Shown here in pieces: positions 18,601 to 62,395 of a stretch of DNA of 64,000 bases. Origin of the DNA: Anaeramoeba ignava BMAN (taxonomy: Eukaryota; Protista; Anaeramoebae). A model generated the notes under the pieces. It was not told where the DNA came from, did no database searches, and saw nothing but the letters and a program-made list of their open reading frames with translations. Every line of letters starts with the position of its first letter. The first letter of the stretch is position 1. The translations under genes and the position numbers were made by a program. Location of the stretch: the NCBI GenBank assembly GCA_028826165.1, contig JAPDFW010000060.1:496001-560000 (forward strand). The letters run 5' to 3'.

Positions 18601-19115
18601 CTTCATTCAAAAGTGGAAGACTTTATAACCAATTAAAAGAAATGAACGAACATTATAAAAACCCTATTTTATTAATTGAAATGGATTCAAAAAGAAAACA
18701 AGAATTAAATGAACCATCTCAAATACTAATCTCAGATCCTACAACTAATATAATCTCTAAAATTACAACTCTTGTTAAACAATTTCCAAATATGAGAATA
18801 ATATGGAGTCAAAATCCAGATTTAACTGCAAATATATTTCTTAATCTTAAATCAAATCATTCTGAACCAAATACTAAAGATGTGAAGAAATTAACAAAAT
18901 CTACTCATTCAGCTTTTAAAATGTTAAAGAAAATGCCAGGAATTAATGATAAAAATTCAAAATTAATTCTTTCTAGAATATCCAATTTTAAAAAATTAGT
19001 TTCTACTCCATTGAAACAATTAGAAATTTTATTAGGAGAAAAAAATGCGAAAGATTTATATAATTTTCTTCGTTATAAAGCTAATACTGAAGACGAAGAG
19101 GATCAAGACAATTAA
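15617..19115 (+). CDS. ERCC4: DNA repair endonuclease XPF (ERCC4/Rad1/MEI-9)
   Basis: Exons 15617-15864 and 16181-19115. Helicase-like YKTGGVIFTTARILIVDLL; nuclease motifs VDNREF and GDYILSSELCVERKTISDL..S..SGRL; C-terminal HhH LKKMPGI. Confidence 0.92.
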
Positions 19116-24860: not shown

Positions 24861-26957
24861 ATGGGAATAACACAATCAAAACAAACAGAACAAATTATTC
24901 AAAAAACACCTTATTCTTCCAAAAATAAAAGAATAGATGGTTATATTCCTGAACAATTTCCAAGAATTGTTGAAAAAGAAGGTCAAAAATTTTATTCTTG
25001 GAATTATCAACAAAATGGTGAAACAATTTATCGTTCAAATTTAGCTAAAGATGGTTTACTTTCGAAATGGAATGAATCAGTTTCAACTTTATATGAAAAT
25101 CTTGAAGTAACAACAAAATCAGCTCCTGATAATCAACTTTTTGGAACAAGAAAATACAATAAAACAACTAAAAAATATGAAGATTATGAATGGAAAACTT
25201 ATAAAGAATTTGGTGAAGAAAGAACTTATTTTGGAAGTGGATTAATTAATTATGGAATTAAAAAAGATGATAGAATTGGAATATTTGCAAAAAACAGATA
25301 TGAATGGGTTCTTACTGAACATTCTGCTTATGCTTATTCATTTTTATTAGTTCCTTTATATCATACTTTTGGAATTCCAAATATTCTTTATATTATTAAT
25401 CATTCAGAATGTAAAGTTGTTATTACTGAAATGAAATATGTTTCTAAATTAAAACAAATTTGTGAAGAATGTAAAACATTAAAATCAATAATTGTTCTTG
25501 ATGATCCTGAAGAAGATATTGATAAATTTTTAGAAGAAAATGAAGATATCAAATTTCTTAATTCACATAATATTAATATTTATAAATTCAATGAAATATT
25601 TGAATCAGGAAAACAAAAACAATATCCTCATCAACCAAATAAAGCTGATGATCTTTGTTCTTTAATTTACACAAGTGGAACAACTTCACAACCCAAAGGA
25701 GTACTTACAACTCACAAAAATCTAATTTCAACAATTGCAGGATTTTATTATATTGGATATGATTTTAGTGATAATGAATCTTATTATAGTTATCTTCCAT
25801 TAAGTCATGTTTATGAAAGAGCATTGGAAGGTACAATGATTTCAATAAGTGCACGTATTGGATTTTCTAGTGGAGACAATACAAAACTTGTTGAAGAAAT
25901 GCAACTTGTTAAACCAACAATATTTACAGGAGTTCCACGTATTTATTCCAAAGTTTATGATAAAGTTACACAAGGAATCAAAAAGAAAAGTATTTTCAGT
26001 CAATATCTTTTTCAAGTAGCATATGAAGCTAAAAAGAAAGCAATCGAAAATGGAGAATCATATGATTTGTGGGATAAATTAGTATTCAATAAAACAAAAC
26101 AACTTCTTGGAGGAAGAATTGAGTTACTGATTTCAGGAAGTGCAGCATTACTTCCTTTACATCAAGAATTTTTCAAAATACTTTTCACTCCTCATTTTGT
26201 TCAAGGATGGGGATTAACAGAAACAGCATCAGGAGGAACTGTCCAGAATCATGAAGATACTATTTGTAATGGAGTAGTTGGACCACCTTTATGTTCTTGT
26301 GAAATCAAACTTGAAAGTGTTCCTGAACTTAATTATAATGTTAATGATAAACCTAATCCAAGAGGAGAGCTTTTGGTTAGAGGACCAAATGTTCTTGAAG
26401 GATATTATAAAAATCCAGAAGCAACAAATGAAGTTATTATTGATGGATGGTTTCATACAGGAGATATTGGAGAAGCACTTCCAAATGGACATCTTAAAGT
26501 TATTGATCGTAAAAAGAATATTTTCAAATTATCACAAGGAGAATATGTTGCACCTGATGTTCTTGAAGGTCTTTATTCAAATTCTCAATATGTTATGCAG
26601 CTTATGGTTTATGGAAATTCACAAGAAGATTATTTAATTGGAATTGCTGTTCCTGAAAAAGAAATTATTTTAGATCATTTCAAAAATGAAAAACAAGAAA
26701 ATGAAAATTCAGAAGAATTTTTTCAAAGAATTTGCCAAGAAGAAAAAATCAAAGAATTAATTTTAAAAGATATGGAAAAAATTGGAAGAGGAGCTAATCG
26801 ATTTGGATTTGAAATTCTTAGAAATATTATAATTGAAACTGAACCATTTTCTGTTGAAAATGATTTACTTACAACAACAATGAAATTAAGAAGAAAAGCG
26901 ATTGAAAATCATTATAAAAAACAATTATTAGATTTATATTTAAATAAGTCTAATTAA
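24861..26957 (+). CDS. ACSL: Long-chain acyl-CoA synthetase, copy 1
   Basis: 698 aa. IYTSGTTSQPKG (AMP-binding), YLPLSHVYE, GWFHTGDIG, IDRKKNIFKLSQGEYVAP. Confidence 0.93.
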   Translation: MGITQSKQTEQIIQKTPYSSKNKRIDGYIPEQFPRIVEKEGQKFYSWNYQQNGETIYRSNLAKDGLLSKWNESVSTLYENLEVTTKSAPDNQLFGTRKYNKTTKKYEDYEWKTYKEFGEERTYFGSGLINYGIKKDDRIGIFAKNRYEWVLTEHSAYAYSFLLVPLYHTFGIPNILYIINHSECKVVITEMKYVSKLKQICEECKTLKSIIVLDDPEEDIDKFLEENEDIKFLNSHNINIYKFNEIFESGKQKQYPHQPNKADDLCSLIYTSGTTSQPKGVLTTHKNLISTIAGFYYIGYDFSDNESYYSYLPLSHVYERALEGTMISISARIGFSSGDNTKLVEEMQLVKPTIFTGVPRIYSKVYDKVTQGIKKKSIFSQYLFQVAYEAKKKAIENGESYDLWDKLVFNKTKQLLGGRIELLISGSAALLPLHQEFFKILFTPHFVQGWGLTETASGGTVQNHEDTICNGVVGPPLCSCEIKLESVPELNYNVNDKPNPRGELLVRGPNVLEGYYKNPEATNEVIIDGWFHTGDIGEALPNGHLKVIDRKKNIFKLSQGEYVAPDVLEGLYSNSQYVMQLMVYGNSQEDYLIGIAVPEKEIILDHFKNEKQENENSEEFFQRICQEEKIKELILKDMEKIGRGANRFGFEILRNIIIETEPFSVENDLLTTTMKLRRKAIENHYKKQLLDLYLNKSN

Positions 26958-27260
26958 TCAATTAATTTTAATTTCAATTTTAATTTCAATTTTAATTTCA
27001 ATTTCAATTTCAATTTCAATTTCAATTTCAATTTCAATTTCAATTTTAATTTCAATTTTAATTTTAATTTTAATTTCAATTTCAATTTTAATTTCAATTT
27101 CAATTTTAATTTTAATTTCAATTTTAATTTCAATTTTAATTTAATTTTAATTTTAATTTCAATTTTAATTTTAATTTCAATTTCGGAATTAAATTTCAAT
27201 TTCCAAAATTTCATTTTTCATTTTTCAATTTTTTATTTTTTTTTAAAATTAAAGTTTTAA

Positions 27261-29030
27261 ATGTCAAAAGGTTCAGCATTACAATTTCTTTCACAAAAAA
27301 AATGGCATGTTCAAACAACACAAAATCAATTAAAAGTATGGCTAGCAGAACAAAAAGAAAAACAACAACAACAAAGGGCATTAGATAGACAAAAAGAATT
27401 TGAAGAAGAAAGAGAATATTTAAAAAATTTGTTTGCTATTATTATTATTTTTTATCAAATAAATAAATCAAATTAAATAATTTTAAATAACTTATCAAAT
27501 TTAATAATAAAAAAATAATTTACAGGCAAATGATTGAGAGTTCAAATCCAGAAGATAAAATTGAAAAAATGAAACAACCACTTCGATTTATGTATGAACA
27601 ACCAAAACAATTAGAACAAAATGATAAAGAAAAACAAGGAGAGAATAAAAATGATTTAAAAAATGTTGATCATCGAACTCTTGATATTCGAGAAAAGTTT
27701 CCCTTTTTAAAAAATGCACCTACAAAAGGAAATTTACAAAGTGGAACAAATCTCAATTTTAAACCTTTGGGAATTCTTGTAAGAAATGTAAAATGTTTAA
27801 GGTAAATTTTCTAATTCTTTTTTTTTTTTAAAATAATTCTTTTTTTAATTAATTAATTAATTTAATTGATTAGATGTGGAAATTTTGGACATCAATCTGG
27901 AGATCGAGAATGTCCAATGTATAATATTAATCCTAATGGTAAATATTTAAAATTCAAATTAAAATTCATTTTAAAATTAAAAATTAAAATCAAAATTAAA
28001 ATTAAAATCAAATTAAAATTAAAAATCAATTTAAAATTAAAATCATTTTAAAATTAAAAATCATTTTAAAATTAAAAATTTGTTCATAAAATTAGATGAT
28101 TTCAGACAAAGAATTGAAGATCCATTATCAATTATGGAAACTCAAAATGCACTTGATGGACTTGAAATTGATTCAAGTTCAACAGGAAATAAATTTAAAT
28201 TAAAATTATCACAATATTTAGCATATAACTCACTTCAAGTTGATGAAAAAAAACAATTAGAAAGTGTAAATATAGAAGATGATACACTTGGCCAAAGTTT
28301 ATTAGCTGGTTTATCAAATCTTGAAAAAAAGGCTCTAATTCAAATGATTAAGCAAATGGAAAAAGAAAAAAAAGAAGAACAAAAAAAAATAAAGAATAAA
28401 CATAAACATAAACATAAACATAAACATAAACATAAACATAAACATAAACATAAACATAAACATAAACATAAAGATAAAGATAAACATAAACATAAAGAAA
28501 AAGATAAAGAAAAAGATAAAGAAAAAGATAAAGATAAAGATAAAGAAAAAGATAAAGATAAAGATAAAGATAAAGATAAAGAAAAAGATAAACATAAACA
28601 TAAAGAAAAAGAAAAAGATAAAGATAAAGATAAACATAAAGAAAAAGATAAAGATAAAGATAAAGAAAAAGATAAAGAAAAAGCTAGAAAGAAAAAGAAA
28701 AGAAAAGATATTTTGGAAGAAAATGAAATATCAGAAAATGACTTAAAAATAAATTCAAATTATGATTTAGATTTGAAGAAAAGAAAAAATGAAAAATATC
28801 ATTCAAATAATTCAAATCATTCACATAATTCAAATCATTCAAATCATTCAAATAATTTAAATCATTCAAATCATTTAAATCATACACATCATTCACATCA
28901 TTTAAATCATTCAAATCATTCAAATCATTCAAATCATTTAAATAATTTAAATCATTCAAATCATTCAAATCATTCAAATCATTCAAATCATTCAAATCAT
29001 TTAAATCATTTAAATCATTTAAATAATTAA
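27261..29030 (+). CDS. CIR1 N-terminal domain / RP9-like zinc-knuckle splicing-associated protein
   Basis: Exons 27261-27430, 27526-27801, 27874-27938, 28096-29030. FLSQKKWHVQTTQNQLKVWLAEQ (Cir_N); KPLGILVRNVKCLRCGNFGHQSGDRECP (CCHC knuckle); HK/DK and NHS low-complexity tail. Confidence 0.8.
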
Positions 29031-29581
29031 AATAATTCAAATCATTCAAATAATTCAAATCATTCAAATCATTCACATCATTCAAATAATTCAAATCATT
29101 TAAATCATTTAAATCATTCAAATCATTTAAATCATTTAAATAATTCAAATAATTCAAATAATTCAAATCATTCACATAATTTAAATCATTTAAATAATTC
29201 AAATCATTCAAATCATTCAAATAATTAAAATAATTCAAATCATTAAAATCATTTCATTTAAAATAATCAAAAATTCAAATAATTCAAAAATTTCATTTTA
29301 AAATTAAATAATTTTAAAATTTAAATAATTCAAATCATTTCTATTTTTATTTCATTTTTCTTTAAAAAATTCTTTTTTATTTTTCAACATTTTCAAAATT
29401 CTTTTTAAAAACAAAAAAACAAAATTTAAATCCAAATCAAATTAAATAAAACTTTTTTTTAAATAATATTTAAAGAAAGCAAAAAAAAAGCAAAAATTAA
29501 ATTTCATTTTTTTTTTCTCCTTTCAGTTTTTTTTTCTTTTCATAAACAAAACAAACTTAAAAAAAAAAGCAAACCAACAAA

Positions 29582-31679
29582 ATGGGAATAACACAATCAA
29601 AACAAACAGAACAAATTATTCAAAAAACACCTTATTCTTCCAAAAGAAAAAGAATAGATGGTTATATTCCTGAACAATTTCCAAGAATTGTTGAAAAAGA
29701 AGGTCAAAAATTTTATTCTTGGAATTACAAACAAAATGGTGAAACAATTTATCGTTCAAATTTAGCTAAAGATGGTTTAATTTCAAAATGGAATGAATCA
29801 GTTTCAACTTTATATGAAAATCTTGAAGTAACAACAAAATCAGTTCCTGATAATCAACTTTTTGGAACAAGAAAATACAACAAAACAACTAAAAAATATG
29901 AAGATTATGAATGGAAAACTTATAAAGAATTTGGTGAAGAAAGAACTTATTTTGGAAGTGGATTAATTAATTATGGAATTAAAAAAGATGATAGAATTGG
30001 AATATTTGCAAAAAACAGATATGAATGGGTTCTTACTGAACATTCTGCTTATGCTTATTCGTTTTTATTAGTTCCTTTATATCATACTTTTGGAATTCCA
30101 AATATTCTTTATATTATTAATCATTCAGAATGTAAAGTTGTTATTACTGAAATGAGGAATATTTCTAAATTAAAACAAATTTGTGAAGAATTTAAAACAT
30201 TAAAATCAATAATTGTTCTTGATGATCCTGAAGAAGATATTGATAAATTTTTAGAAGAAAATGAAGATATCAAATTTCTTAATTCACATAACATTAATAT
30301 TTATAAATTCAATGAAATATTTGAATCAGGAAAACAAAAACAATATCCTCATCAACCAAATAAACCTGATGATCTTTGTTCTTTAATTTACACAAGTGGA
30401 ACAACTTCACAACCTAAAGGAGTACTTGTAACTCACAAAAATCTAATTTCAACAGTAGCAGGATTTTATTATATTGGATATGATTTTTCTGATAATGAAT
30501 CTTATTATAGTTATCTTCCATTAAGTCATGTTTATGAAAGAGCATTGGAAAATACAATGATTGCAGTAAGTTCACGTATTGGATTTTCTAGTGGAGATGT
30601 TACAAAACTTGTTGAAGAGATGCAACTTGTTAAACCAACAGTATTTGCAGGAGTTCCACGTATTTATTCCAAAATTTATGATAAAGTTACACAAGGAATC
30701 AAAAAGAAAAGTATTTTCAGTCAATATCTTTTTCAAGTAGCATATGAAGCTAAAAAGAAAGCAATAGAAAATGGAGAATCATATGTATTATGGGATAAAT
30801 TAGTATTCAATAAAACAAAACAACTTCTTGGAGGGAAAATTCAGTTCATGCTCTCAGGAAGTGCAGCATTACTTCCTTTACATCAAGAATTTTTCAAAAT
30901 ACTTTTCACTCCTCATTTTGTTCAAGCATGGGCATTAACAGAAACAGCAGCAGGAGGAACACTTCAATATTATGAAGATACTATTTGTAATGGAGTAGTT
31001 GGACCACCTTTATCCCTCTTGTGAAATCAAACTTGAAAGTGTTTCTGAACTTAATTATAATGTTAATGATGAACCTAATCCAAGAGGAGAACTTTTGGTT
31101 AGAGGACCAAGTATTTTTAAAGGATATTATAAAAATCCAGAAGCAACAAATGAAGTAATTATTGATGGATGGTTTCATACAGGAGATATTGGAGAAGCAC
31201 TTCCAAATGGACATCTTAAAATTATTGATCGTAAAAAGAATATTTTCAAATTATCACAAGGAGAATATGTTGCACCTGATGTTCTTGAAGGTCTTTATTC
31301 AAATTCTCAATATGTTATGCAAGTTATGGTTTATGGAAATTCACAAGAAGATTATTTAATTGGAATTGCTGTTCCTGAAAAAGAAATTATTTTAGATTAT
31401 TTCAAAAATGAAAAACAAGAAAATGAAAATTCAGAAGAATTTTTTCAAAGAATTTGTCAAGAAGAAAAAATCAAAGAATTAATTTTAAAAGATATGGAAA
31501 AAATTGGAAGAGAAACTAATCGATTTGGATTTGAAATTATTAGAAATATTATAATTGAAACTGAACCATTTTCTATTGAAAATGAATTTATTACAACAAC
31601 AATGAAATTAAGAAGAAAAATTATTGAAAATCATTACAAAAAACAATTATTAGATTTATATTTAAATAAGTCTAATTAA
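29582..31679 (+). CDS. ACSL: Long-chain acyl-CoA synthetase, copy 2 (+1 frameshift at CCC 31014-31016; sequencing error or pseudogene)
   Basis: Near-identical to copy 1. ORFs 29582-31024 and 30999-31679 join if one C is removed (TTA TCC TCT TGT GAA vs copy 1 TTA TGT TCT TGT GAA). Confidence 0.85.
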
Positions 31680-32050
31680 TTAATCAATTTTAATTCCAAT
31701 TTTAATTTCAATTTTAATTTTAATTTTAATTTCAATTTCAATTTTAATTTCAATTTTAATTTTAATTTTAATTTCAATTTTAATTTTAATTTTAATTTTA
31801 ATTTTAATTTTAATTTTAATTTCAATTTTAATTTTAATTTTAATTTTAATTTTAATTTTAATTTTAATTTTAATTTTAATTTTAATTTTAATTTTAATTT
31901 TAATTTTAATTTTAATTTTAATTTTAATTTTAATTTTAATTTTAATTTTAATTTTAATTTCGGAATTAAATTTTAATTTCCAAAATTTCATTTTTCATTT
32001 TTCATTTTTCATTTTTCATTTTTCATTTTTTTTTAAAATTAAAGTTTTAA

Positions 32051-32190
32051 ATGTCAAAAGGTTCAGCATTACAATTTCTTTCACAAAAAAAATGATATTT
32101 TCAAACAACATAAAATCAATTAAAAGTATTGTTTATCAGAACAAAAAGAAAAACAAAAATAACAATCATTATATAGACAAAAAGAATTTA
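32051..32190 (+). pseudogene. Truncated duplicate of the first exon of the CIR1-like gene
   Basis: Identical start ATGTCAAAAGGTTCAGCATTACAATTTCTT..., then TGG>TGA and CAA>TAA stops and indels; similarity ends after about 140 nt. Confidence 0.88.
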
Positions 32191-32399
32191 ACAACTAATT
32201 TTAAAAAGCAATTTTAAAAAGACATTTTAAAAGCAATTTTAATTTTTTTAATTAATTTAATTTTAATTTCAATTTAATTTTCATTTTCAAAAGCAATTTT
32301 TTTCATTTTTCATTTTAAAATTTTAAAAAAATTTTAAAAATAAATTCAAAAGGTTTAAATCAATTTTTTTCACAAAAATTATTTCAAATTTTAAAATCA

Positions 32400-33570
32400 A
32401 AAAATCAATTTATTTTATTTCACAATTTAAAAACAAATCAATTTAATTTTAAATCAATTTAATTTTAAATCAATTTCAAATAATTTTTAAAAACTAATTT
32501 TAAAGCAATTTTAAAAAGACATTTTAAAAGCAATTTTAATTTCAAATTAATTTAATTTCAAATCAATTTCAAAGCAATTTTAAAAGCAATTTTAAAAGCA
32601 ATTTAAAAAGCAATTTTAATTTTAAATTAATTTAATTTTAAATCAATTTATTTTAAATCAATTCATTTCCAAATCAATTTAATTTTAAATCAATTTATTT
32701 CCAAATCAATTTAATTTTAAATCAATTTATTAATTTCCAAATCAATTTAATTCCCAAATCAATTTATTTCCAAATCAATTTAATTCCAAATCAATTTAAT
32801 TTCCAAATCAATTTAATTCCAAATCAATTTATTTTTAAATCAATTTATTTCCAAATCAATTTATTTTTAAATCAATTTATTTCCAAATCAATTTATTTTT
32901 AAATCAATTTATTTCCAAATCAATTTAATTTTAATTCTAATTTAATTTTAAATCAATTTATTTTTAAATCAATTTATTTTTAAATCAATTTATTTTTAAA
33001 TCAATTTATTTCCAAATCAATTTATTTCCAAATCAATTTATTTTTAAATCAATTTATTTCCAAATCAATTTAATTTTAAATCAATTTAATTTTTAAATCA
33101 ATTTAATTTTAAATCAATTTAATTTCCAAATTAATTTATTTCCAAATTAATTTATTTCCAAATCAATTTAATTCCAAATCAATTTATTTCCAAATCAATT
33201 TAATTTCCAAATTAATTTAATTTTCCAAATCAATTTAATTTTAAATCAATTTAATTTTAAATCAATTTAATTTTAAATCAATTTAATTTCAAATCAATTT
33301 ATTTCAAATCAATTTAATTTCCAAATTAATTTAATTTTAAATCAATTTAATTTTAAATCAATTTATTTTTAAATCAATTTAATTTTAAATCAATTTATTT
33401 TTAAATTAATTTAATTCTAAATCAATTTATTTCCAAATCAATTTAATTTTAAATCAATTTAATTTTAAATCAATTTATTTCCAAATCAATTTATTTCCAA
33501 ATCAATTTAATTTTAAATCAATTTAATTTTAATTCTAATTTTATTTTAATTCTAATTTAATTCTAATTCT
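32400..33570. repeat. About 16-nt minisatellite (AAATCAATTTAATTTT / AAATCAATTTATTTCC variants)
   Basis: Read directly; lies between ACSL copies 2 and 3. Confidence 0.88.
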
Positions 33571-34060
33571 AAAATTCCATTTTCCACTTATTCTATTCAA
33601 TTCTATTATAAGATAAATTCCAAACTGAAACAATAATATAAAATTATAAACTTAAAATTTGTTTTCTTTCAATTTTAAATTAAAATTCTTTTATCAAATT
33701 TAATTCCAAAAATTGAATCTTTGAAAAAAAAAAAGAAAATCCACATTTCCAAAACATTCTAAATTAAAATTTAAACAAAAAATGCCAAATTAAATTTAAA
33801 ATTTATCCTTTTATTCAGTTTTTCCAAGTATCAAAATTTTCTTTCTTTAATTTATTATTTAAATTTTTTATTTTATTCTTTTTTAGTTATGTTAATTCCC
33901 CGATCTTATTAACCAATTTAAATTCTTTTGTAAATAAATTAAAATTTTGCTTTTAAAAAAAACTCATAAAACTAAAAATTTTTGATCAAAAAAAAAAAAA
34001 TTAACTTAAGGAAAAAGAAACCAAAAAAAAATTTATTTTACAACTCTCAAAAAAATAAAA

Positions 34061-36211
34061 ATGAGTATAACTCAATCAAAAAAACAAATTGACAAAACAA
34101 ATGAAACTGAAAAAGTAAAACACACTGAAAAAACAAATGAAACAGAACAAACTCTCCAAACTTTACAAAAGAGCAAAAATAAAAGAATAGATGGTTATAT
34201 TCCTGAACAATTTCCAAGAATTGTTGAAAAAGAAGGTCAAAAATTTTATTCTTGGAATTACAAACAAAATGGTGAAACAATTTATCGTTCAAATTTAGCT
34301 AAAGATGGTTTAATTTCAAAATGGAATGAATCAGTTTCAACTTTATATGAAAATCTTGAAGTAACAACAAAATCAGTTCCTGATAATCAACTTTTTGGAA
34401 CAAGAAAATACAACAAAACAACTAAAAAATATGAAGATTATGAATGGAAAACTTATAAAGAATTTAGTGAAGAAAGAACTTATTTTGGAAGTGGATTAAT
34501 TAATTATGGAATTAAAAAAGATGATAGAATTGGAATATTTGCAAAAAACAGATATGAATGGGTTCTTACTGAACATTCTGCTTATGCTTATTCGTTTTTA
34601 TTAGTTCCTTTATATCATACTTTTGGAATTCCAAATATTCTTTATATTATTAATCATTCAGAATGTAAAGTTGTTATTACTGAAATGAAGAATATTTCTA
34701 AATTAAAACAAATTTGTGAAGAATTTAAAACATTAAAATCAATAATTGTTCTTGATGATCCTGAAGAAGATATTGATAAATTTTTAGAAGAAAATGAAGA
34801 TATCAAATTTCTTAATTCACATAACATTAATATTTATAAATTCAATGAAATATTTGAATCAGGAAAACAAAAACAATATCCTCATCAACCAAATAAAGCT
34901 GATGATCTTTGTTCTTTAATTTACACAAGTGGAACAACTTCACAACCCAAAGGAGTACTTATAACTCACAAAAATCTAATTTCAACAATTGCAGGATTTT
35001 ATTATATTGGATATGATTTTTCTGATAATGAATCTTATTATAGCTACCTTCCATTAAGTCATATTTATGAAAGGGTAATACTCAATTCAATGATTGCAGT
35101 AAGTTCACGTGCTGGATTTTCTAGTGGAGATATTACAAAACTTGTTGAAGAGATGCAACTTGTTAAACCAACAATATTTATAGGAGTTCCACGTATCTAT
35201 TCCAAAATTTATGATAAAGTTACACAAGGAATCAAAAAGAAAAGTATTTTCAGTCAATATCTTTTTCAAGTGGCATATGAAGCTAAAAAGAAAGCAATAG
35301 AAAATGGAGAATCATATGTATTATGGGATAAATTAGTATTCAATAAAACAAAACAACTTCTTGGAGGGAAAATTCAGTTCATGCTCTCAGGAAGTGCAGC
35401 ATTACTTCCTTTACATCAAGAATTTTTCAAAATACTTTTCACTCCTCATTTTCCACAAGTATGGGGATTAACAGAAACAGCAGGAGGAGGAACACTTCAA
35501 CATTATGAAGATACTATTTGTAATGGAGTAGTTGGACCACCTATAGCCTGCTGTGAAATCAAACTTGAAAGTGTTCCTGAACTTAATTATAATGTTAATG
35601 ATGAACCTAATCCAAGAGGAGAACTTTTGGTTAGAGGACCAAGTGTTTTTAAAGGATATTATAAAAATCCAGAAGCAACAAATGAAGTTATTATTGATGG
35701 ATGGTTTCATACAGGAGATATTGGAGAAGCACTTCCAAATGGACATCTTAAAGTTATTGATCGTAAAAAGGATATTTTCAAATTATCACAAGGAGAATAT
35801 GTTGCACCTTATGCTCTTGAAGGTCTTTATTCAAATTCTCAATATGTTATGCAAGTTATGGTTTATGGAAATTCACAAGAAGATTATTTAATTGGAATTG
35901 CTGTTCCTGAAAAAGAAATTATTTTAGATTATTTCAAAAATGAAAAACAAGAAAATGAAAATTCAGAAGAATTTTTTCAAAGAATTTGTCAAGAAGAAAA
36001 AATCAAAGAATTAATTTTAAAAGATATGGAAAAAATTGGAAGAGAAACTAATCGATTTGGATTTGAAATTATTAGAAATATTATTATTGAAACTGAACCA
36101 TTTTCTATTGAAAATGAATTTATTACAACAACAATGAAATTAAGAAGAAAAATTATTGAAAATCATTATAAAAAACAATTATTAGATTTATATTTAAATA
36201 AGTCTAATTAA
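34061..36211 (+). CDS. ACSL: Long-chain acyl-CoA synthetase, copy 3
   Basis: 716 aa, same motifs as copy 1, with an extended N-terminus containing a KTNETE duplication. Confidence 0.93.
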   Translation: MSITQSKKQIDKTNETEKVKHTEKTNETEQTLQTLQKSKNKRIDGYIPEQFPRIVEKEGQKFYSWNYKQNGETIYRSNLAKDGLISKWNESVSTLYENLEVTTKSVPDNQLFGTRKYNKTTKKYEDYEWKTYKEFSEERTYFGSGLINYGIKKDDRIGIFAKNRYEWVLTEHSAYAYSFLLVPLYHTFGIPNILYIINHSECKVVITEMKNISKLKQICEEFKTLKSIIVLDDPEEDIDKFLEENEDIKFLNSHNINIYKFNEIFESGKQKQYPHQPNKADDLCSLIYTSGTTSQPKGVLITHKNLISTIAGFYYIGYDFSDNESYYSYLPLSHIYERVILNSMIAVSSRAGFSSGDITKLVEEMQLVKPTIFIGVPRIYSKIYDKVTQGIKKKSIFSQYLFQVAYEAKKKAIENGESYVLWDKLVFNKTKQLLGGKIQFMLSGSAALLPLHQEFFKILFTPHFPQVWGLTETAGGGTLQHYEDTICNGVVGPPIACCEIKLESVPELNYNVNDEPNPRGELLVRGPSVFKGYYKNPEATNEVIIDGWFHTGDIGEALPNGHLKVIDRKKDIFKLSQGEYVAPYALEGLYSNSQYVMQVMVYGNSQEDYLIGIAVPEKEIILDYFKNEKQENENSEEFFQRICQEEKIKELILKDMEKIGRETNRFGFEIIRNIIIETEPFSIENEFITTTMKLRRKIIENHYKKQLLDLYLNKSN

Positions 36212-40394: not shown

Positions 40395-43300
40395 ATGGAT
40401 CCAACTTCACTTACTTATTATCTTTCACAACTTGGATATGATCGCAGAGAAATAAGAAAAGCTCTTCGAGAAACAAAATCGACAAATGTTGATGAGATTG
40501 TTATGTATATTAACAACTCCAAATACGATGCGCAAAAGAAAAAAGATGATGAAGAACAAGAAAAGCAAAAACAATTAAAACTTGAAGAAGAAAAAAAGCA
40601 AAAAGAACAACTTGAAAAAGAGAACCAAGAAAAAGAACAAAAAGAAAAAGAAAAAAAAGAACAAGAACAAAAAGAAAGAGAATTAAAAGAACAAAAAAAG
40701 AAAGAAGAAATTGCAAAAAAAAAGTTAGAACGTAAAAAGAAAAAGAAAAAACAATCTTATTCTGATTCTGATGATAATAAGGAATGGAATGATTCTAATT
40801 CTTATGAATATTCTGGAAATGATTTAAGTGGTGATTCTGAGCAAGAAAATGAAAATGAAAATGAAAATGAAACTGTAAATCTATTTCGAATAATTTTTAT
40901 TATAAAATTAAAATTCATTTATAAAATTAAAATTAAAATTAAAATTAAAATTAATATTAAAATTAAAATTAAAATTAAAATTAAAATTAAAATTAAAATT
41001 AAAATTAAAATTAATATTAAAATTAGAATTAAAATTAAAATTAAAATTAAAATTAAAATTAAAATTAAAATTAATATTAATATTAATATTAAAATTAAAA
41101 TTAAAATTAAAATTAATATTAAAATTAATATTAAAATTAAAATTAAAATTAAAATTAATATTAAAATTAAAATTTAAATAAAAATTATAATTAATATTAA
41201 AATAATAGCTAAAACCAGAAGATACAGAAACACCAACACCTTATCCAAATGATTTTGAAAATGATGATGATGGATTAGATGTTTTAATAGCCGAAGAAAA
41301 AAAGAAAATTAAAACAAGTGTTTTAACTGAAGATGAATTAATTAGAAAACAAGAAAAATTAATTTCCAAAGTTTCAGAAATAATTGATAGAAATTATGAA
41401 GAAACACGTTTATTATTAAGAAAAAATCAATGGAATGAAGAAAAATTTCTTTCAAAGTAAAAAAATTGAATTAAAAATTAAAAATTAAAAATTGAATTTA
41501 AATTTAAATTTAAATTTAAATTTGAAAAGATATTTTGCTAATCCACAAACTACATGTCAAGAAGCTGGTATTAAATATACAGGAAAATCTACAAAAAAGA
41601 AAATATCTTCATTTATGTGTGGAATTTGTGGAGAAGATTTTGAAGATAATCCTGATGAAATGTTTGCTTTAGATTGTGGACATGCATTTTGCAAAGATTG
41701 TTGGAGAAATTATTTAAATTTAAAGATTAAAGAAGCACAAGTACATTTAATTCAAAAAATAATTTAATTTAAGAAATAATTTAATTTAAGAAATAATTTA
41801 ATTTAAGAAATAATTTAATTCAAAAAATAATTTAATTCAAAAAATAATTTAATTCAAAAAATAATTTAATTCAAGAAATAATTTAATTTAAATTAATTTA
41901 AAATAATTTAATTTAAGAAATAATTTAATTTGAAATAATTTAAAATAATTTAATTTGAAATAATTTAAAATAATTTAATTTGAAATAATTTAATTCAAAA
42001 AATAATTTAATTTGAAATAATTTAAAATAATTTAATTTGAAATAATTTAATTCAAAAATTAATTCAAAAAATAAATCAATTTAATTTAATTCTAGGTTGG
42101 AGCAATTCCTTGTCCTGGTTTTAGATGTCAAAATAAAGTTAGTAGTGAAGTTATTCGATCAATTGTTACAGAAGGAACATTTAAACAATATATCCGTTTT
42201 CAAGCACATTCATTTGTAGAAGAAAATCCAGATGTAAAATGGTGTCCAGCACCAGGATGTGGAAGAGCTGTTCATCCATCTCAAGTACAATTTCATATGG
42301 TAAAATGTGATTGTGGACATCGTTATTGGTAATATATATAAAAATATATTTGAAATTTTAAAGAAAAAAAAAAGCAAAAAAAATTTTTTAATAAGAGGAT
42401 TTGCTAATCCAAATATTTATTCTGGTTTTTCATCATAAAAAATCTTAATTTAAATTTTTTTCATTTAGTTTTGAATGCCAAGAAGAACCTCATGGTCCTG
42501 CAACTTGTCAACAAGTAGAGGAATGGAAAAAAAGAATAAATGAAGGTAAAAAAGATACAGAAACAGATTCTTGGATGAATGAAAATACTAAACCATGTCC
42601 AAAATGCAAAGTGTTGATTGAAAAAAATGGAGGTTGCAAGTAAATAATTTCAAAATTAAATCAAAATTAAAAATTAAAAATTAAAAATTAAAAATTAAAT
42701 TAATAGTCATATGACTTGCTACAAATGCCACTATGAATTTTGTTGGATTTGCTTAGATCCTTGGGCGGGTCATACTTCTTATTATACATGCCTTGCAAAA
42801 GGAACAGAAATTCTCATTTATAGAAATAATAAAATAGAAATTGAAAAAGTTGAAAATGTAAAAAATGGAGACTTACTTGTTGGAGATGATGAAACAAAAG
42901 GAACAAAAAATCAAAGATTGGTTTCAGATGTTTTTAGTCATTCTGGAAAATTATATCAAATAACTCAATCAAATGCTGATCCTTATTCTGTGAATGAACA
43001 CCATCTTTTATCACTTAGATTAACAAAAAACCCTCAAATTGTTCTTTTGCACAATGAAATATTCACAGAATTTAGCTGGATGATTGAATATTTTGATCCA
43101 AAAACTCATAATAGAAAGTATGTTTTGAATGATGTTTTTGAGAATGAAATTTGCCAAATGAGTCAGGAAAAAATGCAAAAATATTGGAAAAAGCAAGAAT
43201 ATTTTGATTCAGATGGAAGTTTTTTTGAAAAAGAATCAAAAGAATTGGGAATTAAATTGGATGCTAAAATGCTGAGGAAACTTCAAGAATCTTTTTATAT

Positions 43301-45698
43301 TGTTTACAAGGAATTAAAGAGAATGATTTTGAAAGGAAAAACTGCCGTTGCAGGAGATGTAATTGATATAAGTGTTCGTAATTATATTCATAAGAAAACA
43401 AATGAATGGAAAGAATTGCATAAAGGATTTCAAGTGAGTGGCTTTTGTGAAAAGCAAACAATATTGTTTGATCCTTATAGTTTTGCATTTGAATTGGCTT
43501 TATCGAAAGCAACCAACTTTCTTCCTGAAAATGTTGTTTATAACTCACCAGAAATACAAGCAAAGGCATTAGCAGGGTTAATGGATTCAATGGCACAAGA
43601 AGAAGATGGAGAAATTGTTTTCCATTTCTCTGTTTTAGATCCATTGGTTGATGATGTTTGCTTCCTTTGCAAATCATTAGGATTAGTTTCCAAACAAGAA
43701 CACTATTTTGATAAAAACCAAAAATCAAGCAGAATTCAAGTCTCAATTTCAGGAAGAAAATTAAAAGAAATTCCAATCAGAAATTTTGAAATTAAAAATC
43801 TTAAATGCGAAGAAGAGAATCTGCAAGATATCGAAATTGATGAGGTTAAGTATAATGTTATTCACAAAGAAAGCGGAAAGAAAATATTTGCAGGAAAAAA
43901 TCACTTGCTGGATTTGGTGTTTGAACCGAATGAAGCTATAAGATATTTAGTTGGTGTAAAAGACTCACAGAAAAGAATAAGAAAATTACAAGCATTTTCA
44001 GATGAAAAAGAAGTGGAAAAATTTGTGTCGTTAAAACAGAAAATGGAAGGAAATGGAAATTATGATAAGAATAATAACAAAAAGAATTTTCAATTAAAAG
44101 GCGAATCTTTTTATCAGCAAAAATTGGAAGAAAAAGAAGGAAGTTTAGTAGTAATCACTTCGGAAAAGAATTTCCCAAACAATCTTATCAATAAAACCGA
44201 GTTTTCAAGTTATATTGCGATTGAAATACAGGAATATTTGAAACTCTCAACAGAACTCAAATCCACATTGAAGTCTTTTTACTACACAAAACAAAATGGT
44301 TTAAATTGTCAAATCAGAAAAGAAAAACGGGAAGAAATTCAAGTGCAAAAGAGTATAAATGGAGAAGGTAGATATTATGGAATAACAGTCGACGGAGATA
44401 AAAGATTTCTTTTGAAAGATTTCACAGTAACACACAACTGCAATCGGTATGAAAAGGCAAAGGAAAACGAAGCAAAACTAAAGAAAGAACTCAATTACGA
44501 TCGGGAAGATGAAAGGAGATACAATCATCATTTCGACCGTTATCAGAACCACAGTCGGTCTTTGGAATTCGAGAACAGAATGCTTAAAAAGGTGTCACAA
44601 GACTTACAAAGAATGAAACCAAAAGACCCTAACTATCGACGAGTAACAACAATTCGAGACGCACTTGATGTTCTTATAGACAACAGATACTCACTCAAAT
44701 ATTCTTATGTGTTCGGATATTACTGTCCAAGAGGAACGGTTCAGGATTTGTTTCTTTTCATGCAAACAGATCTGGAGAAATCAACAGAAGATCTTTCTCA
44801 TTCGATTGAGCACTTACAAAAAGTAGACACAATTTACTTACAAAACTTAACAAAACTCGCAAGTTCACGAAGATATGCATTACTTGAGATCTTGACTGAT
44901 ATTGATAAGGATGGAAACATGATTTACATCCCTGAACAAAAGAGTACAAATCGAACTCCAAATCAAAGCAGATGGGCAGAGGATGACGAGAAACCGCAAA
45001 TAAAAGAAGAACCAATTGTTGAAGAAATTCAAACAAGAAGAATTTTACCAACACAACCAAGAACAAGAATATCACCAACACAACCAAGAACATCACCAAC
45101 AAGAATATCACCAACACAAACAAGAACATCACCAACACAACCAAGAACAAGAATAACAACAACAACAACAACAAGATCAACAGCAACATCCACAGAATCA
45201 GTCAACCCAGATGCACTTGAACGACAACTTCTGAACAATATCACATCGATATTTTCTCAACAACTTCCTCGAATGGAAAGATTAAGAACACAATTTTCTG
45301 ATAGAAGAAATCCTCCGCCTCCTCCTCAAAACCCACCACCACCACCTCAAAACCCTATAAGACCTCCTCCCAATAATCCTTTCCAATTCCAACAACCCCC
45401 ACCACCACCTCCCCGACAAAACAATCCTCCTCCTCCTCAAAATGTTAGAAATCCTCCTCCACCTCCTCCACCTGATTTCTTTATTCCTGAAGATAATAAC
45501 CAAAATCCTATTGCAAGATTCTTTCTTCAACCCAGATTCTGGGCAATTTTGGCTCAAGACGACCGTTTTTCTCAATATCTTACTGATAATGAATTTACAA
45601 GAAAAGTTGCCACAATAAGAAATAATTTATCAACTTTGGATTCTTTTCTTGATGATCAAAGAATTATTCGTTTACTTGAAACTTTTGTTTGGAATTAA
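40395..45698 (+). CDS. ARIH: Ariadne-family RBR E3 ubiquitin ligase (UBA - acidic - RING1 - IBR - RING2 - Ariadne - Pro-rich - STI1/DP-like), intein-containing precursor
   Basis: Exons 40395-40874, 41209-41456, 41530-41740, 42096-42328, 42469-42639, 42707-45698. RING1 CGIC..CGHAFCKDCW..CPGFRC; IBR WCPAPGC..CDCGHRYCFEC..HGPATC; RING2 [37 protein letters not shown](intein)-CNRY; Ariadne RYNHHFDRYQNH..LKYSYVFGYY. Confidence 0.93.
42789..44438 (+). mobile_element. Intein, 550 aa, class-1 (Cys1...His-Asn / Cys+1), with degenerate LAGLIDADG homing endonuclease
   Basis: Block A CLAKGTEILIY; block B YSVNEHHLL; EN remnants DPYSFAFELA, LAGLMDS, LVDDVCFLCKSLG; blocks F/G YYGITVDGDKRFLLKDFTVTHN followed by C. 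Removal restores the Ariadne motif [10 protein letters not shown]. Confidence 0.95.
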
Positions 45699-57165: not shown

Positions 57166-60100
57166 GAAGGAATAGAAGAAGGATATTCAGCATATAGTTG
57201 TACAAAATTTGTAATGCAAGCAAATGGAAGTGATTCAAATGATTGTAGTTCATCTGGAACAGCTTGTGCATCAATAGAAAGAGGACTTCTTCTCACTCCA
57301 CAAGGTGGTGTTCTTTGTGTTTATTCGGGTCATTATTATATTTCTTCCACTTTAAACATTCATATGACCACTTTTACTATGTGGGCTCCTGATGGTCCAA
57401 GTCAAACTATTATTGATGGAGGTAATTCAAAACAATGTGTTAATATTTATGTCAATGGGATGGGAGTTGTCACGATTGATGGTTTTACTTTCCAATATTG
57501 TAATGCTAATGAAGGTATTTTTTATCCAAAATCAAAATCAAAATCAAAATCAAAATCAAAATTAAAATCAAAATTAAAATTAAAATCAAAATTAAAATCA
57601 AAATCAAAATCAAAATCAAAATTAAAATTAAAATCAAAATCAAAATTAAAATTAAAATTAAAATTAAAATTAAAATCAAAATCAAAATTAAAATTAAAAT
57701 TAAAATTAAAATTAAAATCAAAATCAAAATCAAAATCAAAATTAAAATTAAAATCTAAAATCAAAATCAAAATCAAAATCAAAATTAAAATTAAAATCAA
57801 AATCAAAATCAAAATTAAAATCAAAATTAAAATCAAAATTAAAATCAAAATTAAAATTAAAATCAAAATTAAAATTAAAATCAAAATTCAAATTAAAATT
57901 AAAATCAAAATTAAAATAAAAATTTAAAATTAAAATCAAAATAAAAATTAAAATTAAAATTAATTAGGAGGAGCAATAGCTGTTACTTGTTCAATAGTTG
58001 GTTATATCGCAAAGATTAAAAACTGTGAATTTTATCACAATCAAGCAAAAATAGGAGGAGCAATTTATAATTTTCTATGTGCAGCAACCTATGAGAATAT
58101 AATAATTGCAGAAAATTCAGCAAGTGATTCAGGTGGAGGTTTTTCTTGTACAATATCAACCGCATGTCAGAATGTACAGTTAACATGGAATAACATCACA
58201 ATAGTAGACAATACAGGAAATGGAAACAAGAGTATTGATGAAATAGGAAATCCAAATTGTGGGTCATGTTCATGTGTATATAATGGAAATAGGATGTATG
58301 ATTGTGGAGATTGTTATAACGGTGGTAATTGTTTACCAAGTGGATCATGTGTATGTCTTCCTGGATCACATGCTCCAACTCCAACTTGTTCATTTTGTGA
58401 TCCTGGATCTTATTCAACTACTCAAAATGCTGCTTCTTGTACTCTTTGTGAACCGAATTATTACAATACTGGTTATGGTAATACTGGCTGTTCTTCTTGT
58501 CCTACTGATACTTCTAATTCAGGTTCAGGAAATATTGAATGTTCTCCTCCTCAAATGTCTGATCCTACTTATGATTCTGTTACTTCTAGTTCTTTTAATG
58601 TTTATTGGACAACTCCAAGTTTGTTTTCTGTTAGTGGTTATTATCTTAGATATAAATCTACTGGTGATTGGACTTCTTTACAACTTTCTTCAAGTGTTCA
58701 TCAATATAACTTTTCAGATTTATATTCAGGAGATTATACTATTCAAGTTGCTGCATATAATAATGAAGGTGAATTATCAAATAAAAGAAATATCTTAATA
58801 ATAATATTTAAATAAAATATTTTAAATTATATTTGTAAATTTTGTTGAAATAGGAAATGGCACTTGGACTAATGAAATTGTTATAGCTACAAATCCTCCA
58901 ACTCAACCTTCAATCGTTCCAAATATAGCTGAAGTTTTAGAAATGAAATCTTCAACATCATTCGGAGTTAGTTGGGGAACACCTTCAAATGGTGGAAGTC
59001 CTTTAATTTCATATGAAATAAATTATAAACCAGAAAATGGAACTTGGATTAATTCTACAGTTGGAGCAGAAACACATTCATTTCAAGCAACATCACTTCT
59101 TTCTGGCAAATACATCTTCAGAATTCGTGCCAAAAGTAATTATTCATTCGGAGATTATTCTTCAGAACACTCATTCTGGACAAATGAAGCAACATGTCCT
59201 GATGCAATAACAACATTTAACGAAGTAAATCACACACAGGAAACAATATCTGTTAACTGGACAGCTCCAGCTTCAAATGGAGGATCCACTATAATTAATT
59301 ATCAAGTCGCATACTTAAAAGATGGTGAAACTACTTGGTCTTATAAACTTGAACCAGCAAATACTTATGAATCAACAATTGAGGATTTAATTTACGGAAC
59401 TTATACTATTCGTGCTAGAGCAATAACTTCATATTGTAACACATCAGAATTCAGTCAAAATTTATCAATCGAAACAGGTGCACCAACAGAACCTGATCCA
59501 GTTACTTCAATCTCACAAACAGGAAAATCATCAACTTCAATTTTAATTTCTTGGATTGAACCTTGTTCTTGTGGCTCACCAATTATTGGATATCGTTTAT
59601 GGTACAAATATGAAGATGCAGAACCTGCTGAAGATTTTCAATCCATTGATCTTTATAGCACAAATTTATATTACAATTTGGATAATTTACTTTCTGGAAA
59701 TTACACATTCAAAATACAATCAAACAACTCAATAAATTTTTCTGTAAATGGAACAGAATTTTCATTCAGTACAGATCCTGCAACTTATCCTGGAAATATG
59801 CAACCTCCCTATAAAATATCTGGTACATCTTCGGAAATTCAAATTGGATGGGCTGAACCTAGTAATAATGGAGGTTCTGTAATTGTTTTTTACTTTATTG
59901 AATACAAAAAAAATACAACTTCGATTTTCGATCAATTTAATACTTCAAATTCATCAACAAGTTGCACTATTGGTTCACTTGAGGAATTACAATATTACAA
60001 TTTCCGAATCAAAGCTTGCAATGATATTGGATGTAGTGAATCGTGGAGTAATAATGCCACATATATAACTGATGGATCAACAGTTCCAGGAAAAGTTGCT

Positions 60101-62395
60101 CAACCTTCATTTCTTAATTCAACATCAACATCATTTGCATTTAGTTGGACAAAACCAACTGATGGAGGTAAAGATATACTTTACTACACAATATTATACA
60201 AATTAAGCACATCTGGTTCATGGACTGAGATAATTTTAAATGTTGAACCATCAGCAACAAATCTTGAATATGTAATTGATGATATTTACTCAGGAACTTA
60301 TAACGTTAGAATTTCAGCCACTAATGAAAATGGAGAAGGAATATCAAGTGATTCAACTCCATTTTCCACTTCTGCTGCAACAGCTCCAAATCCTGTTTTG
60401 AATCTTCAATTTATCAGTTCATCTTCAACTTCTATTTACATGACTTGGGATCCACCAACTTCAAATGGAGGAAGAGATATCATCAATTTCTTTGTTCAAT
60501 TCGATTCATTGAATCCAAATGGAACATCAGGAAGTGTTTCAATATCAGAATATGTTCTTCAATTCAACCTCACAAACTTGATTTCAGATTCTTATAATAT
60601 CACTGTTTATGCTGCTAATTCAATTGGAAATTCAACAGGAAATCAAGAAGAAATGAACACATTATCACCTCAAATCCCAGATAAAATCACAGGATTCACT
60701 CAAATTTCAGCAACTTCAACTTCAATAACACTTCAATGGAATCAACCCAATAATAACGGAAGACCAATACTCAATTACAACTTCTCAATAACTTCATATT
60801 CAACAAATACAACAGAATACATGATTATTGATCCTCCTCAATCCTCATTCCAATACAAAATATCAAATTTATTATCAGGTGTTTTCGATATTGCGATATC
60901 TGCTATAAATGAAGTTGGATCATCAATTTATAGTGATGTTTTATTAGCTCAAACATCTCAACCAACAGTACCAGGAATAATGGATCCAGTAAATTCAACA
61001 GCAATTAATTCAACATCACTCAATGTGAATTGGACTAAACCAAACAATGGAGGATTGAATATCACATCTTACATTTTATCCTACAGAGAACAAGATACTA
61101 ATATTTCCAATTCAACCCAATTATCTTTTGGTTCATCAACATTTGAATACAATATCACTGGTTTGCTCTCTGGAAATTATTCAATCGCAATGAAAGCAGT
61201 GAATCCATTGGGAAGTTGCAATAGTTGGAGCACTGATACAAATGTTTCAACACTTGATCCTGTAGTTCCTGGAGAAATTGAATCAATAAATGTTGATGAA
61301 ATTAGAAGACATTCTCTCCTATTTTCTTGGGAAGTACCAAATCATGGAGGAAGAGAAATTGAAGGATATAATCTAACATGTGCTCAAACAGATAATCTTA
61401 CTAATTCAGCATTTTCACAAGTTGATTCAACAGTTGGATTTTTTGATAATTTAACAACAAACACAAGTTACACACTCACAATAAGTGCATTTAATTCAGA
61501 AGGATATGCAAATCCAAGAGAATTTGTACTTTGCACACAATCCTATTATCCAAACAAAGTTACAGGGGTTTATTTGAAGAATATTGAGCCTTATATTGCA
61601 GTGATAGGATGGAATGATTTGGATGATATTGATATCACAACATACACAGCTATGATTACTGATGTTTACAACAGAACAAATTTTATCTCACTTTTTTGCT
61701 CATTTGACAGTTTGATTCCAAACACAAATTACACAGTTAAAGTGCGAGCAGAAGTAAGTGAATATATTGGTGATTGGAGCAATGATTTCAATTTCACAAC
61801 AAATAAAACAGTTCCAGAAAAAGTTGTTGATATAACAGCAACTCAAATCGAAGATAACTTGATTAATCTTGAATGGCCAATCCCACGAAACAATGGAGAA
61901 GAAATCACACAATATTACACTCAAGCTTTACTCAATGACGAATTACAAAATGAAGTAATTTCACTTGCAAACAGTGTATCGATTGGAAATCTGAAAGAAG
62001 TAACAAATTATTCAATAAGAATAAGAGCAATTAATTCAATCGGATATTCAGCTTGGAGCGATAATTATTATTTCACAACTCAATCAGCTCCTAAACAAAC
62101 AAGTAAAACAGGATTATATGCAGGTCTTGGAACAAGTTTTGGAGCTTTGGCTATTGTTGGAGGTGTTGCTTTTTATTGGTATAAAAAGAGAAAAGTTGTA
62201 AAAGTAACTCCAACAGTTAATGTTTATTCTGTTAATGATGAAGATGAAGATGGTGATAAAGATAATGAAAATCCAAAAAATGATCCTGTTAATGAAATTG
62301 TTATGGAAACTGTTGAAACTGAAAAAGATTTATATCTTCAAAGTATTGAAAACTCTACTTCAAAACTTACTAATGATACTAACGATAAGAAATGA
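57031..62395 (+). CDS. Type I surface protein: signal peptide, Pmp/beta-helix-like GGAI region, EGF/Cys-rich, 12 FN3, TM, short acidic tail
   Basis: Exons 57031-57514, 57968-58768, 58854-62395 (about 1608 aa). IIDGG, GGAIAV, GGAIYN, GGGF; CYNGGNCLPSGSCVCLPG; CDPGSYS..CTLCEPNYY; repeated FN3 W..P.NGG..I..Y; TM GLYAGLGTSFGALAIVGGVAFYWYKKRK. Confidence 0.88.

Follow-up and report, generated by a model that had tools for sequence, protein, structure and literature searches.

We have found that the gene for an Ariadne RBR ubiquitin ligase of Anaeramoeba ignava contains a large intein, which is located directly in front of the last zinc-binding cysteine of the catalytic RING2 domain. The window analysed here comprises 64,000 nucleotides of contig JAPDFW010000060.1, in which the insert occupies positions 42789-44438; all features described below are encoded on the forward strand. 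Sequence and predicted-fold data confirm that the insert is a class 1 intein of the VMA1/PI-SceI type, and its residues predict that it excises itself from the precursor protein.

Joining of six GT-AG exons yields exactly the 1444 aa NCBI protein P0005. Exon 1 (40395-40874) encodes a weak UBA-like start (Pfam UBA, E 0.003) and a charged region, and exon 2 (41209-41456) an acidic stretch that is probably the Ariadne UBA-like domain; both match P0005, for which PF21235 is listed, a domain that presumably falls into exon 2. RING1 is located in exon 3 (41530-41740; Pfam zf-RING_UBOX, E 9e-9), which is joined to exon 4 in RNA contigs of the samples X3 and X4. Exon 4 (42096-42328) encodes the IBR domain (Pfam IBR, E 4e-11) and is followed by an intron that is likewise skipped in both samples, and exon 5 (42469-42639) contains the end of the IBR domain and the start of RING2 (Rcat) according to Pfam search, alignment with ARIH1 and P0005. 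Exon 6 (42707-45698) contributes the remaining part of the P0005 reconstruction. The codon for the catalytic cysteine (42635-42637, equivalent to ARIH1 C357) was identified in the sequence by alignment to the ARIH1 motif GGCNHM. It is followed by an Asn codon that is split by a 67 nucleotide GT-AG intron (42640-42706), seen in P0005 as well as in the RNA contigs, which stop at 42639 and restart at 42707. An intron is found at the equivalent place in all four Ariadne paralogs. After protein splicing, the distance from the catalytic cysteine to the +1 Cys would be 29 residues, so that the exon model agrees with the positions given for both in the earlier note.

The N-extein part of exon 6 (42707-42788) encodes the end of RING2 with three ligands of zinc site II (ARIH1 alignment; PMC3772753), namely Cys 42741-42743 (position -16), Cys 42750-42752 (-13) and His 42771-42773 (-6). 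It aligns to ARIH1 as far as the RING2 histidine (E 2e-46), and the alignment of the C-extein begins at ARIH1 residue 389 (E 2e-14), which completes zinc site II as its fourth ligand (PMC3772753). The +1 Cys (44439-44441) is equivalent to this C389, which bears out the earlier proposal that the presumed splicing nucleophile is at the same time the last zinc ligand of RING2. Downstream follow the Ariadne domain (44442-44903; Pfam Ariadne, E 7e-8), in which the autoinhibitory residues, equivalent to ARIH1 F430, E431 and E503, are kept (alignment; PMC7904520), and a Thr/Arg- and Pro-rich tail with the stop codon (44904-45698). The tail ends with an STI1/HOP DP-like domain (around 45531-45683), where the Pfam match to STI1-HOP_DP (E 4e-5) is below the cut-off; a comparable end is present in the sister paralog C60. 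With RING1-IBR-RING2, the Ariadne domain and the catalytic Cys and His, the host has the domains and catalytic residues of an Ariadne RBR E3 ligase. The residues required are kept and the A. ignava genome encodes eight cullin neddylation domains; the host ligase is predicted to form a ubiquitin thioester and to be activated by neddylated cullins.

The insert consists of 550 open codons in frame, starts with CLAKGT, ends with VTHN and is followed by CNRY; the insertion described previously could be reproduced within P0005. The Hint domain expected for it was detected with Pfam Hom_end_hint (PF05203) over intein residues 1-549 (E 8e-7), with a score of 29.7 bits that is slightly below the Pfam cut-off of 32.1 because of inserts, and a profile made from 93 relatives scored 196 bits. 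Searches of NCBIfam and of PDB sequences with the intein alone returned nothing useful; the fold search was successful, with the AlphaFold-predicted fold matching PI-SceI (Foldseek E 1e-10) and other inteins too. The predicted model contains a Hint fold, with high pLDDT values across the splicing regions. The match to PI-SceI and the relatives in viruses are in line with the assignment to the VMA/giant-virus type in the earlier note.

The N-terminal splicing region (42789-43016, pLDDT mostly >90) contains block A with Cys1 and block B with Asn69 and His72, and the C-terminal splicing region (44364-44438) contains blocks F and G and ends with His549-Asn550. Cys1, His72, His549 and Asn550 are invariant across 77 aligned inteins and form, together with the +1 Cys, the complete class 1 residue set. 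Between the splicing regions we found an auxiliary region (43029-43445) with a long helical insert shared with the A. ignava CDC14 inteins according to alignment and trees (support 98/96), and, by profile alignment, a degenerate LAGLIDADG homing endonuclease (43470-43780). Block C of the latter lacks Gly-Asp-Gly, block E lacks the catalytic Asp and the following Gly, and about 60 amino acids are absent between them. Pfam Hom_end and LAGLIDADG profiles did not match this region, compared to 69 and 45 of the 77 aligned inteins, respectively. The endonuclease motifs are broken alike in the intein of a paralog, with the catalytic Asp missing from both motifs in both proteins, and homing activity is thus not expected for either.

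The front half of the intein is present a second time at 43842-44288, as a partial, diverged copy with a block-B-like His and an auxiliary region but no block A. The intein is the largest of the family members collected, which have a median length of about 340 amino acids. In what follows, C61 denotes the host gene studied here and C60 its sister paralog. The second copy went undetected in a plain BLAST self-comparison and is visible only by profile, scoring 22 bits in C61 and 39 bits in C60 (maxima of 8.7 and 11.5 bits, respectively, in 500 shuffles). At this threshold, the only other two-copy inteins among 128 were the one in C60 and one mis-cut tandem pair, and none of 66 viral inteins had a second copy. 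In its structure, the model of the second copy resembles Hint domains weakly (best Z 7.5), a likeness that is partly circular because the model was built from the front-half alignment. The second copy stands apart from the first in free trees, and the AU test does not reject a grouping of both (p 0.47). It could have arisen by duplication within the intein or be left over from a second intein.

Two of the four Ariadne paralogs are intein-free. The remaining one besides C61, the sister paralog C60, contains a related intein of 513 amino acids at the equivalent site. Neither the two intein-free paralogs nor the further Ariadne proteins retrieved contain the insertion; these show a matching junction, as anticipated for empty sites, with a His-to-Cys spacing of five residues, as here, in 13 of 20 rows. 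In the two intein-free paralogs an intron is located about 35 nucleotides upstream of the empty site, which is probably too far away to block homing. The C61 and C60 proteins are 50-56% identical in the splicing regions, 23-38% in the rest of the intein and 56-74% in the exteins. The two inteins are sisters (support 100), as are the two hosts (100/100), in trees that are based on short and divergent alignments; this fits with one insertion before the duplication. We saw no sign of a recent transfer between C61 and C60, since fourfold sites, although few in number, have diverged to about the same extent in the intein as in the exteins.

Taken together, the intein is probably an old selfish element that is no longer mobile and most likely splices constitutively. 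A member of a promiscuous intein family of the VMA1/PI-SceI type, common in viruses, would have inserted into the Ariadne gene directly in front of the last zinc cysteine of RING2. Any intein requires a Cys, Ser or Thr at position +1, and here the conserved zinc cysteine would supply this nucleophile. The gene would then have been duplicated together with the intein, giving rise to C61 and C60. Subsequently the endonuclease would have decayed, and the splicing residues would have stayed under selection because exact loss of the DNA is difficult and the host needs splicing. The 1444 aa precursor would follow the class 1 route, in which an N-S shift at Cys1 is followed by attack of the +1 Cys, cyclisation of Asn550 and an S-N shift. 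This should release an 894 aa Ariadne ligase with a complete RING2, which presumably remains autoinhibited unless bound to a neddylated cullin ligase. The earlier note had argued that ligase activity depends on splicing; this is likely, because 64 kDa of intein separate RING2 from the docking Ariadne domain. Its further claim that the precursor is unable to complete zinc site II was left unproven, since Cys1 follows the N-extein in the register which the +1 Cys takes after splicing. The long retention of both inteins despite intein-free paralogs would also fit with a benefit to the host.

A coupling to zinc is conceivable given the three zinc ligands just before Cys1. In this case Cys1 (or the +1 Cys) would join the N-extein Cys, Cys and His in binding zinc, which would idle the nucleophile and set splicing against zinc loading of RING2. 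The ligands lie at -16, -13 and -6, with Cys1 in the register of the native ligand, site II has been described as the weaker site (PMC3772753), and there are precedents in the Cryptococcus Prp8 intein, which is blocked by zinc at its catalytic Cys (PMC6805012), and in mycobacterial DnaB, the splicing of which is inhibited by zinc in vivo (PMC7360933). However, Cys1 is part of the active site of the Hint domain and perhaps unable to reach the zinc site, inhibition by zinc is general to inteins and thus no sign of adaptation, a trap of this kind would be prone to poison its host when the cytosol is replete with zinc, and the intein-free paralogs make regulation partly redundant. We therefore regard a zinc gate as unlikely. 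A little less likely again is the more elaborate version in which Cys1 is the stand-in fourth ligand for the three RING2 ligands, so that a zinc finger of the host gates splicing and, through it, ligase maturation, with the intein itself consisting of one and a half inteins fused to each other. If true, a eukaryotic E3 would here carry a metal switch formed by the exteins. Whether a zinc site in an extein is able to control splicing, a question behind the debate about inteins as sensors, could be tested cleanly at this insertion site.

It is slightly more doubtful still that splicing is inefficient or the intein undergoes cleavage only, in which case C61 and C60 would act unspliced or cut and the intein-free paralogs would do the ordinary Ariadne job. 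The size of the intein with its extra partial copy and the long branch on which the C61/C60 host pair lies in the tree would agree with this. Against it, C61 has retained its splicing residues, catalytic Cys, zinc ligands and autoinhibitory residues, and in both paralogs no part of the intein is better conserved than the splicing regions. A point against the main reading is that the extra copy, about 150 residues long, could disturb folding.

A redox switch, in which a disulfide at Cys1 or the +1 Cys keeps the ligase off under oxygen stress, is very improbable. It would suit the anaerobic host and the several cysteines near the junction, and the MoaA intein of P. abyssi, in which an N-extein Cys bonds Cys1, provides a precedent (PMC10663303). 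But C61 has no Cys at -3 or nearby, and its nearest N-extein cysteines (-13 and -16) are zinc ligands; the six further cysteines of the intein have no conserved counterpart in the paralog, so that a MoaA-type trap is lacking on both counts. In addition, many A. ignava inteins have Ser or Thr at +1, and no general redox logic is apparent. With only Cys1 common to both inteins, no trap at Cys-3 and two intein-free paralogs, the redox or metal switch suggested earlier found no support.

That the insert is an intron or an assembly artefact has practically no probability left: apart from the A. ignava genome being intron-rich, no point speaks for it, the 550-codon open frame lacks GT-AG ends, a diverged copy is present at the equivalent site of the paralog, the insert is unbroken in DNA contigs, and RNA contigs of two samples of unrecorded library type (X3 and X4), the only RNA evidence used, have the upstream intron removed and read through the insert unbroken, which rules this reading out.

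The intein-containing Ariadne protein is already on record: an identical protein (100%, 1444 aa) is named 'intein-containing e3 ubiquitin-protein ligase ari5-related precursor [Anaeramoeba ignava]' in NCBI, and the novelty implied by the earlier note was therefore too high. The main text of Gallot-Lavallee et al. 2023 (PMC10710043) gives 550 aa for the largest A. ignava intein, a size equal to that of the Ariadne intein. The same main text does not discuss the Ariadne host, the zinc-ligand site, the second paralog, the doubled front half, the link to CDC14 or the broken endonuclease of both paralogs. It describes Anaeramoeba intein hosts as mostly replication and repair proteins and does not mention ubiquitin, so that it lends no support to the idea that many of these inteins reside in ubiquitin-related genes, and reports that three other Anaeramoeba inteins splice.

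The front half of the intein is closest to the A. ignava CDC14 inteins (support 98/96), a link that rests on this half, as a quick tree of the whole intein left the grouping unsupported. The family occurs at more than a dozen further A. ignava loci, and relatives are encoded by at least 472 viral stretches, including giant-virus MAGs, where they are mostly located in P-loops. No other RBR ligase with an intein was found among 1.84 billion representatives or the viral loci examined, one of these searches being insensitive, as it also missed intein-free Ariadne proteins. Literature searches on inteins and Ariadne and on tandem inteins yielded nothing relevant. The Ariadne intein is one among about 100 catalogued in A. 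ignava and shows once more that the family also settles in hosts unrelated to nucleotide binding; RBR ligases remain rare as a host type. Two small and apparently new hints, the relation to the CDC14 inteins and the doubling of the front half, bear on how inteins spread to non-allelic sites and recombine with each other.

Several known systems can be compared. The CDC14 inteins (L003 and L006) share the long insert and likewise use a functional cysteine as +1 residue, but are only 267-277 amino acids long, lack an endonuclease and are located before the catalytic Cys of a phosphatase. Cluster 15 of PMC10710043 comprises 24 A. ignava proteins, VMA and Prp8 among them, with 28 sites, as well as nine viral proteins. 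It is likewise a VMA-like, promiscuous family that has members in viruses and occupies many non-allelic sites in A. ignava, and the Ariadne intein may belong to it. The VMA1 intein PI-SceI of S. cerevisiae, the best structural match, has the same class 1 residues, a +1 Cys and the same Hint, auxiliary and LAGLIDADG parts, whereas the Ariadne intein is only about 12% identical, has a broken endonuclease and an extra partial copy, and resides in an E3 ligase. P. abyssi MoaA, C. neoformans Prp8 and M. smegmatis DnaB are alike in that Cys1 chemistry can be blocked by zinc or oxidation; in contrast to MoaA, the Ariadne intein has no junction-adjacent extein Cys. Human ARIH1/HHARI shares with the host the RING1-IBR-RING2-Ariadne order, the catalytic Cys-x-His, all eight RING2 zinc ligands and F430, E431 and E503, whereas the A. 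ignava protein differs in the intein before the C389 equivalent, the N-terminal UBA-like and charged region and the Pro-rich tail with its STI1 DP-like end.

Translation of the window at 42789-44438 gives 550 open codons, running from CLAKGT to VTHN and followed by CNRY, within the last of six GT-AG exons that, joined locally by script, reproduce the public 1444-aa host protein P0005 exactly. Searches used exons and exteins separately, or the whole host under its public id P0005. In the host, Pfam detected RING1, IBR, both parts of RING2, the Ariadne domain and, weakly, a terminal STI1 DP match. The Hint domain predicted by the earlier note was found as Pfam Hom_end_hint, spanning insert residues 1-549 (E 8e-7); the insert is a real intein. 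The N-extein can be aligned to human ARIH1 as far as the RING2 His, and the first C-extein residue corresponds to ARIH1 residue 389, a member of zinc site II (C372, C375, H382, C389) in a domain that requires zinc for folding (PMC3772753). This confirms the proposal that the last zinc ligand serves as +1 nucleophile; the catalytic Cys codon, the intron-split Asn and the 29-residue distance to the +1 Cys were also described correctly. Excision would restore the Ariadne RING2 end as expected, with a junction of the type usual among protist Ariadne proteins. No adaptive explanation is required for the choice of a zinc ligand as +1 residue, because any intein depends on a conserved Cys, Ser or Thr there. 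At 45531-45683 an STI1/HOP DP-like domain, preceded by a Pro-rich linker, ends the ligase; it is shared with the C60 paralog and unusual for the family. Elsewhere the window contains a two-ring AAA ATPase (13270-15516), an ERCC4 nuclease (16467-19115), three consecutive AMP-binding (acyl-CoA synthetase-like) ORFs (24861-36211) and a fibronectin-repeat protein (58943-62395).

Contigs from sequencing runs X3 and X4 have exon 3 joined to exon 4 and lack the intron at 42329-42468, which shows that they derive from spliced RNA. The same contigs are continuous across the insert into the Ariadne domain, and the reading as an intron, to be checked in RNA according to the earlier note, is rejected; being contigs with unrecorded library type, they show the presence of the insert in RNA and not its level. 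At 43513, run X3, from another sample, has T where the window has C (intein Thr242 to Ile, just past endonuclease block C), and X1 and X4 show T>C at 44847.

The intein is already annotated in the public record, where P0005 bears the NCBI name 'intein-containing e3 ubiquitin-protein ligase ari5-related precursor [Anaeramoeba ignava]'. For A. ignava BMAN (42.8 Mb, 147 contigs), the main text of PMC10710043 reports 103 inteins with a maximum length of 550 aa, the length found here. That main text mentions neither ubiquitin, Ariadne nor ligase and gives replication and repair proteins as most intein hosts, so the assertion that many hosts in Anaeramoeba are ubiquitin-related is unsupported.

Cys1, His72, His549 and Asn550 are invariant across 77 aligned inteins, and the AlphaFold model, confident over the splicing regions and the endonuclease, best matches PI-SceI. 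Judged from its motifs, the endonuclease is broken: block C is without Gly-Asp-Gly, ~60 residues are missing ahead of block E, and block E is without the catalytic Asp. Other A. ignava inteins of the family reside mostly in P-loops (L004, L008, L011, L013-L016, L018, L023-L025, L027); an intact block C motif is absent from all aligned A. ignava members, and in L012, L017 and L021 the intein is split across frames or stops.

Profile scores revealed, at 43842-44288 between the endonuclease and block F, a second copy of the intein's front half, diverged and incomplete, with block A missing; its presence helps explain the record length. It scored 22 bits here and 39 in the C60 paralog (shuffle maxima 8.7 and 11.5) and, with the exception of the latter, was not found in the other inteins examined (128 collected and 66 viral). 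Since head-to-tail tandem inteins exist in the family (P0008, P0054, P0124), the copy is possibly the remnant of a collapsed tandem pair. In metagenome proteins (these three, P0035 and P0114) family inteins lie directly head to tail or three host residues apart in a P-loop; a literature search found no paper on tandem inteins. Internal duplication of the front half is not rejected (AU test, p-AU 0.47). P0055, a duplicate of L011, was left out of all trees, and P0124, P0008 and L014 additionally out of the front-half trees and the AU test; one intein tree was computed after removing the second copy by local script.

Four Ariadne genes were found in the A. ignava genome. In the C60 paralog (L002:1210-2748, G000:C60:831299-832837, minus strand) this RING2 site is likewise occupied, by an intein of 513 aa that is ~37% identical to the window intein and also has a broken endonuclease and a second partial copy; the paralog's tail may occupy a separate exon or frame. 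The paralogs on C71 and C81 (L044 and L045, the latter KAJ5072679.1) provide the empty site that the earlier note suggested looking for. Both have an intron ~35 nt upstream of that site and further introns downstream, and the matching region of the two intein-bearing paralogs has none of these. In trees the C61 (window) and C60 inteins group as sisters, as do their hosts, thus a single insertion before gene duplication is the simplest history. The two inteins are 50-56% identical in the splicing regions versus 23-38% in the remainder, a pattern that suggests selection for splicing.

Class 1 splicing, following its established chemistry, would turn the 169-kDa precursor into an 894-aa ligase and a free intein of 64 kDa. 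According to alignment with ARIH1 the Ariadne domain retains the equivalents of F430, E431 and E503, which would keep RING2 closed as long as no neddylated cullin is bound; the genome encodes eight cullin neddylation domains. RING2 has to dock on the Ariadne domain and makes large movements in the course of the cycle (PMC7904520), so normal ligase function probably requires splicing. The dependence claimed earlier is therefore likely to hold, however its proposed cause, a missing fourth zinc ligand, is uncertain, because Cys1 stands after the N-extein in the register that the +1 Cys would take. This register opens the idea of a host-built zinc gate on splicing, for which Prp8 and DnaB inteins offer precedents, and which we regard as quite improbable. 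As for the redox switch of the earlier note, the extein cysteine required for a MoaA-type disulfide trap is absent, and Cys1 is the only conserved intein cysteine. A conditional-splicing switch is unsupported for the Ariadne intein.

Viral relatives of the intein are numerous and mostly occupy P-loop sites; giant-virus MAGs and helicases of Salmonella phages are among their carriers, and none of the viral relatives examined has a RING host. No other RBR with an intein was present in the best 150 of 1.84 billion representatives, although a high rank would be expected for an RBR carrying the same intein family. The nearest relatives of the front half are the genome's two CDC14 inteins (L003 on C71 and L006 on C102), which are 267-277 aa long, endonuclease-free and located directly before the catalytic Cys; in trees they cluster with it (support 98/96), and the alignment shows a long insert common to both. 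This relationship fits the non-allelic spread described in PMC10710043, and the CDC14 and Ariadne sites are alike in that both use a functional Cys as the +1 residue.
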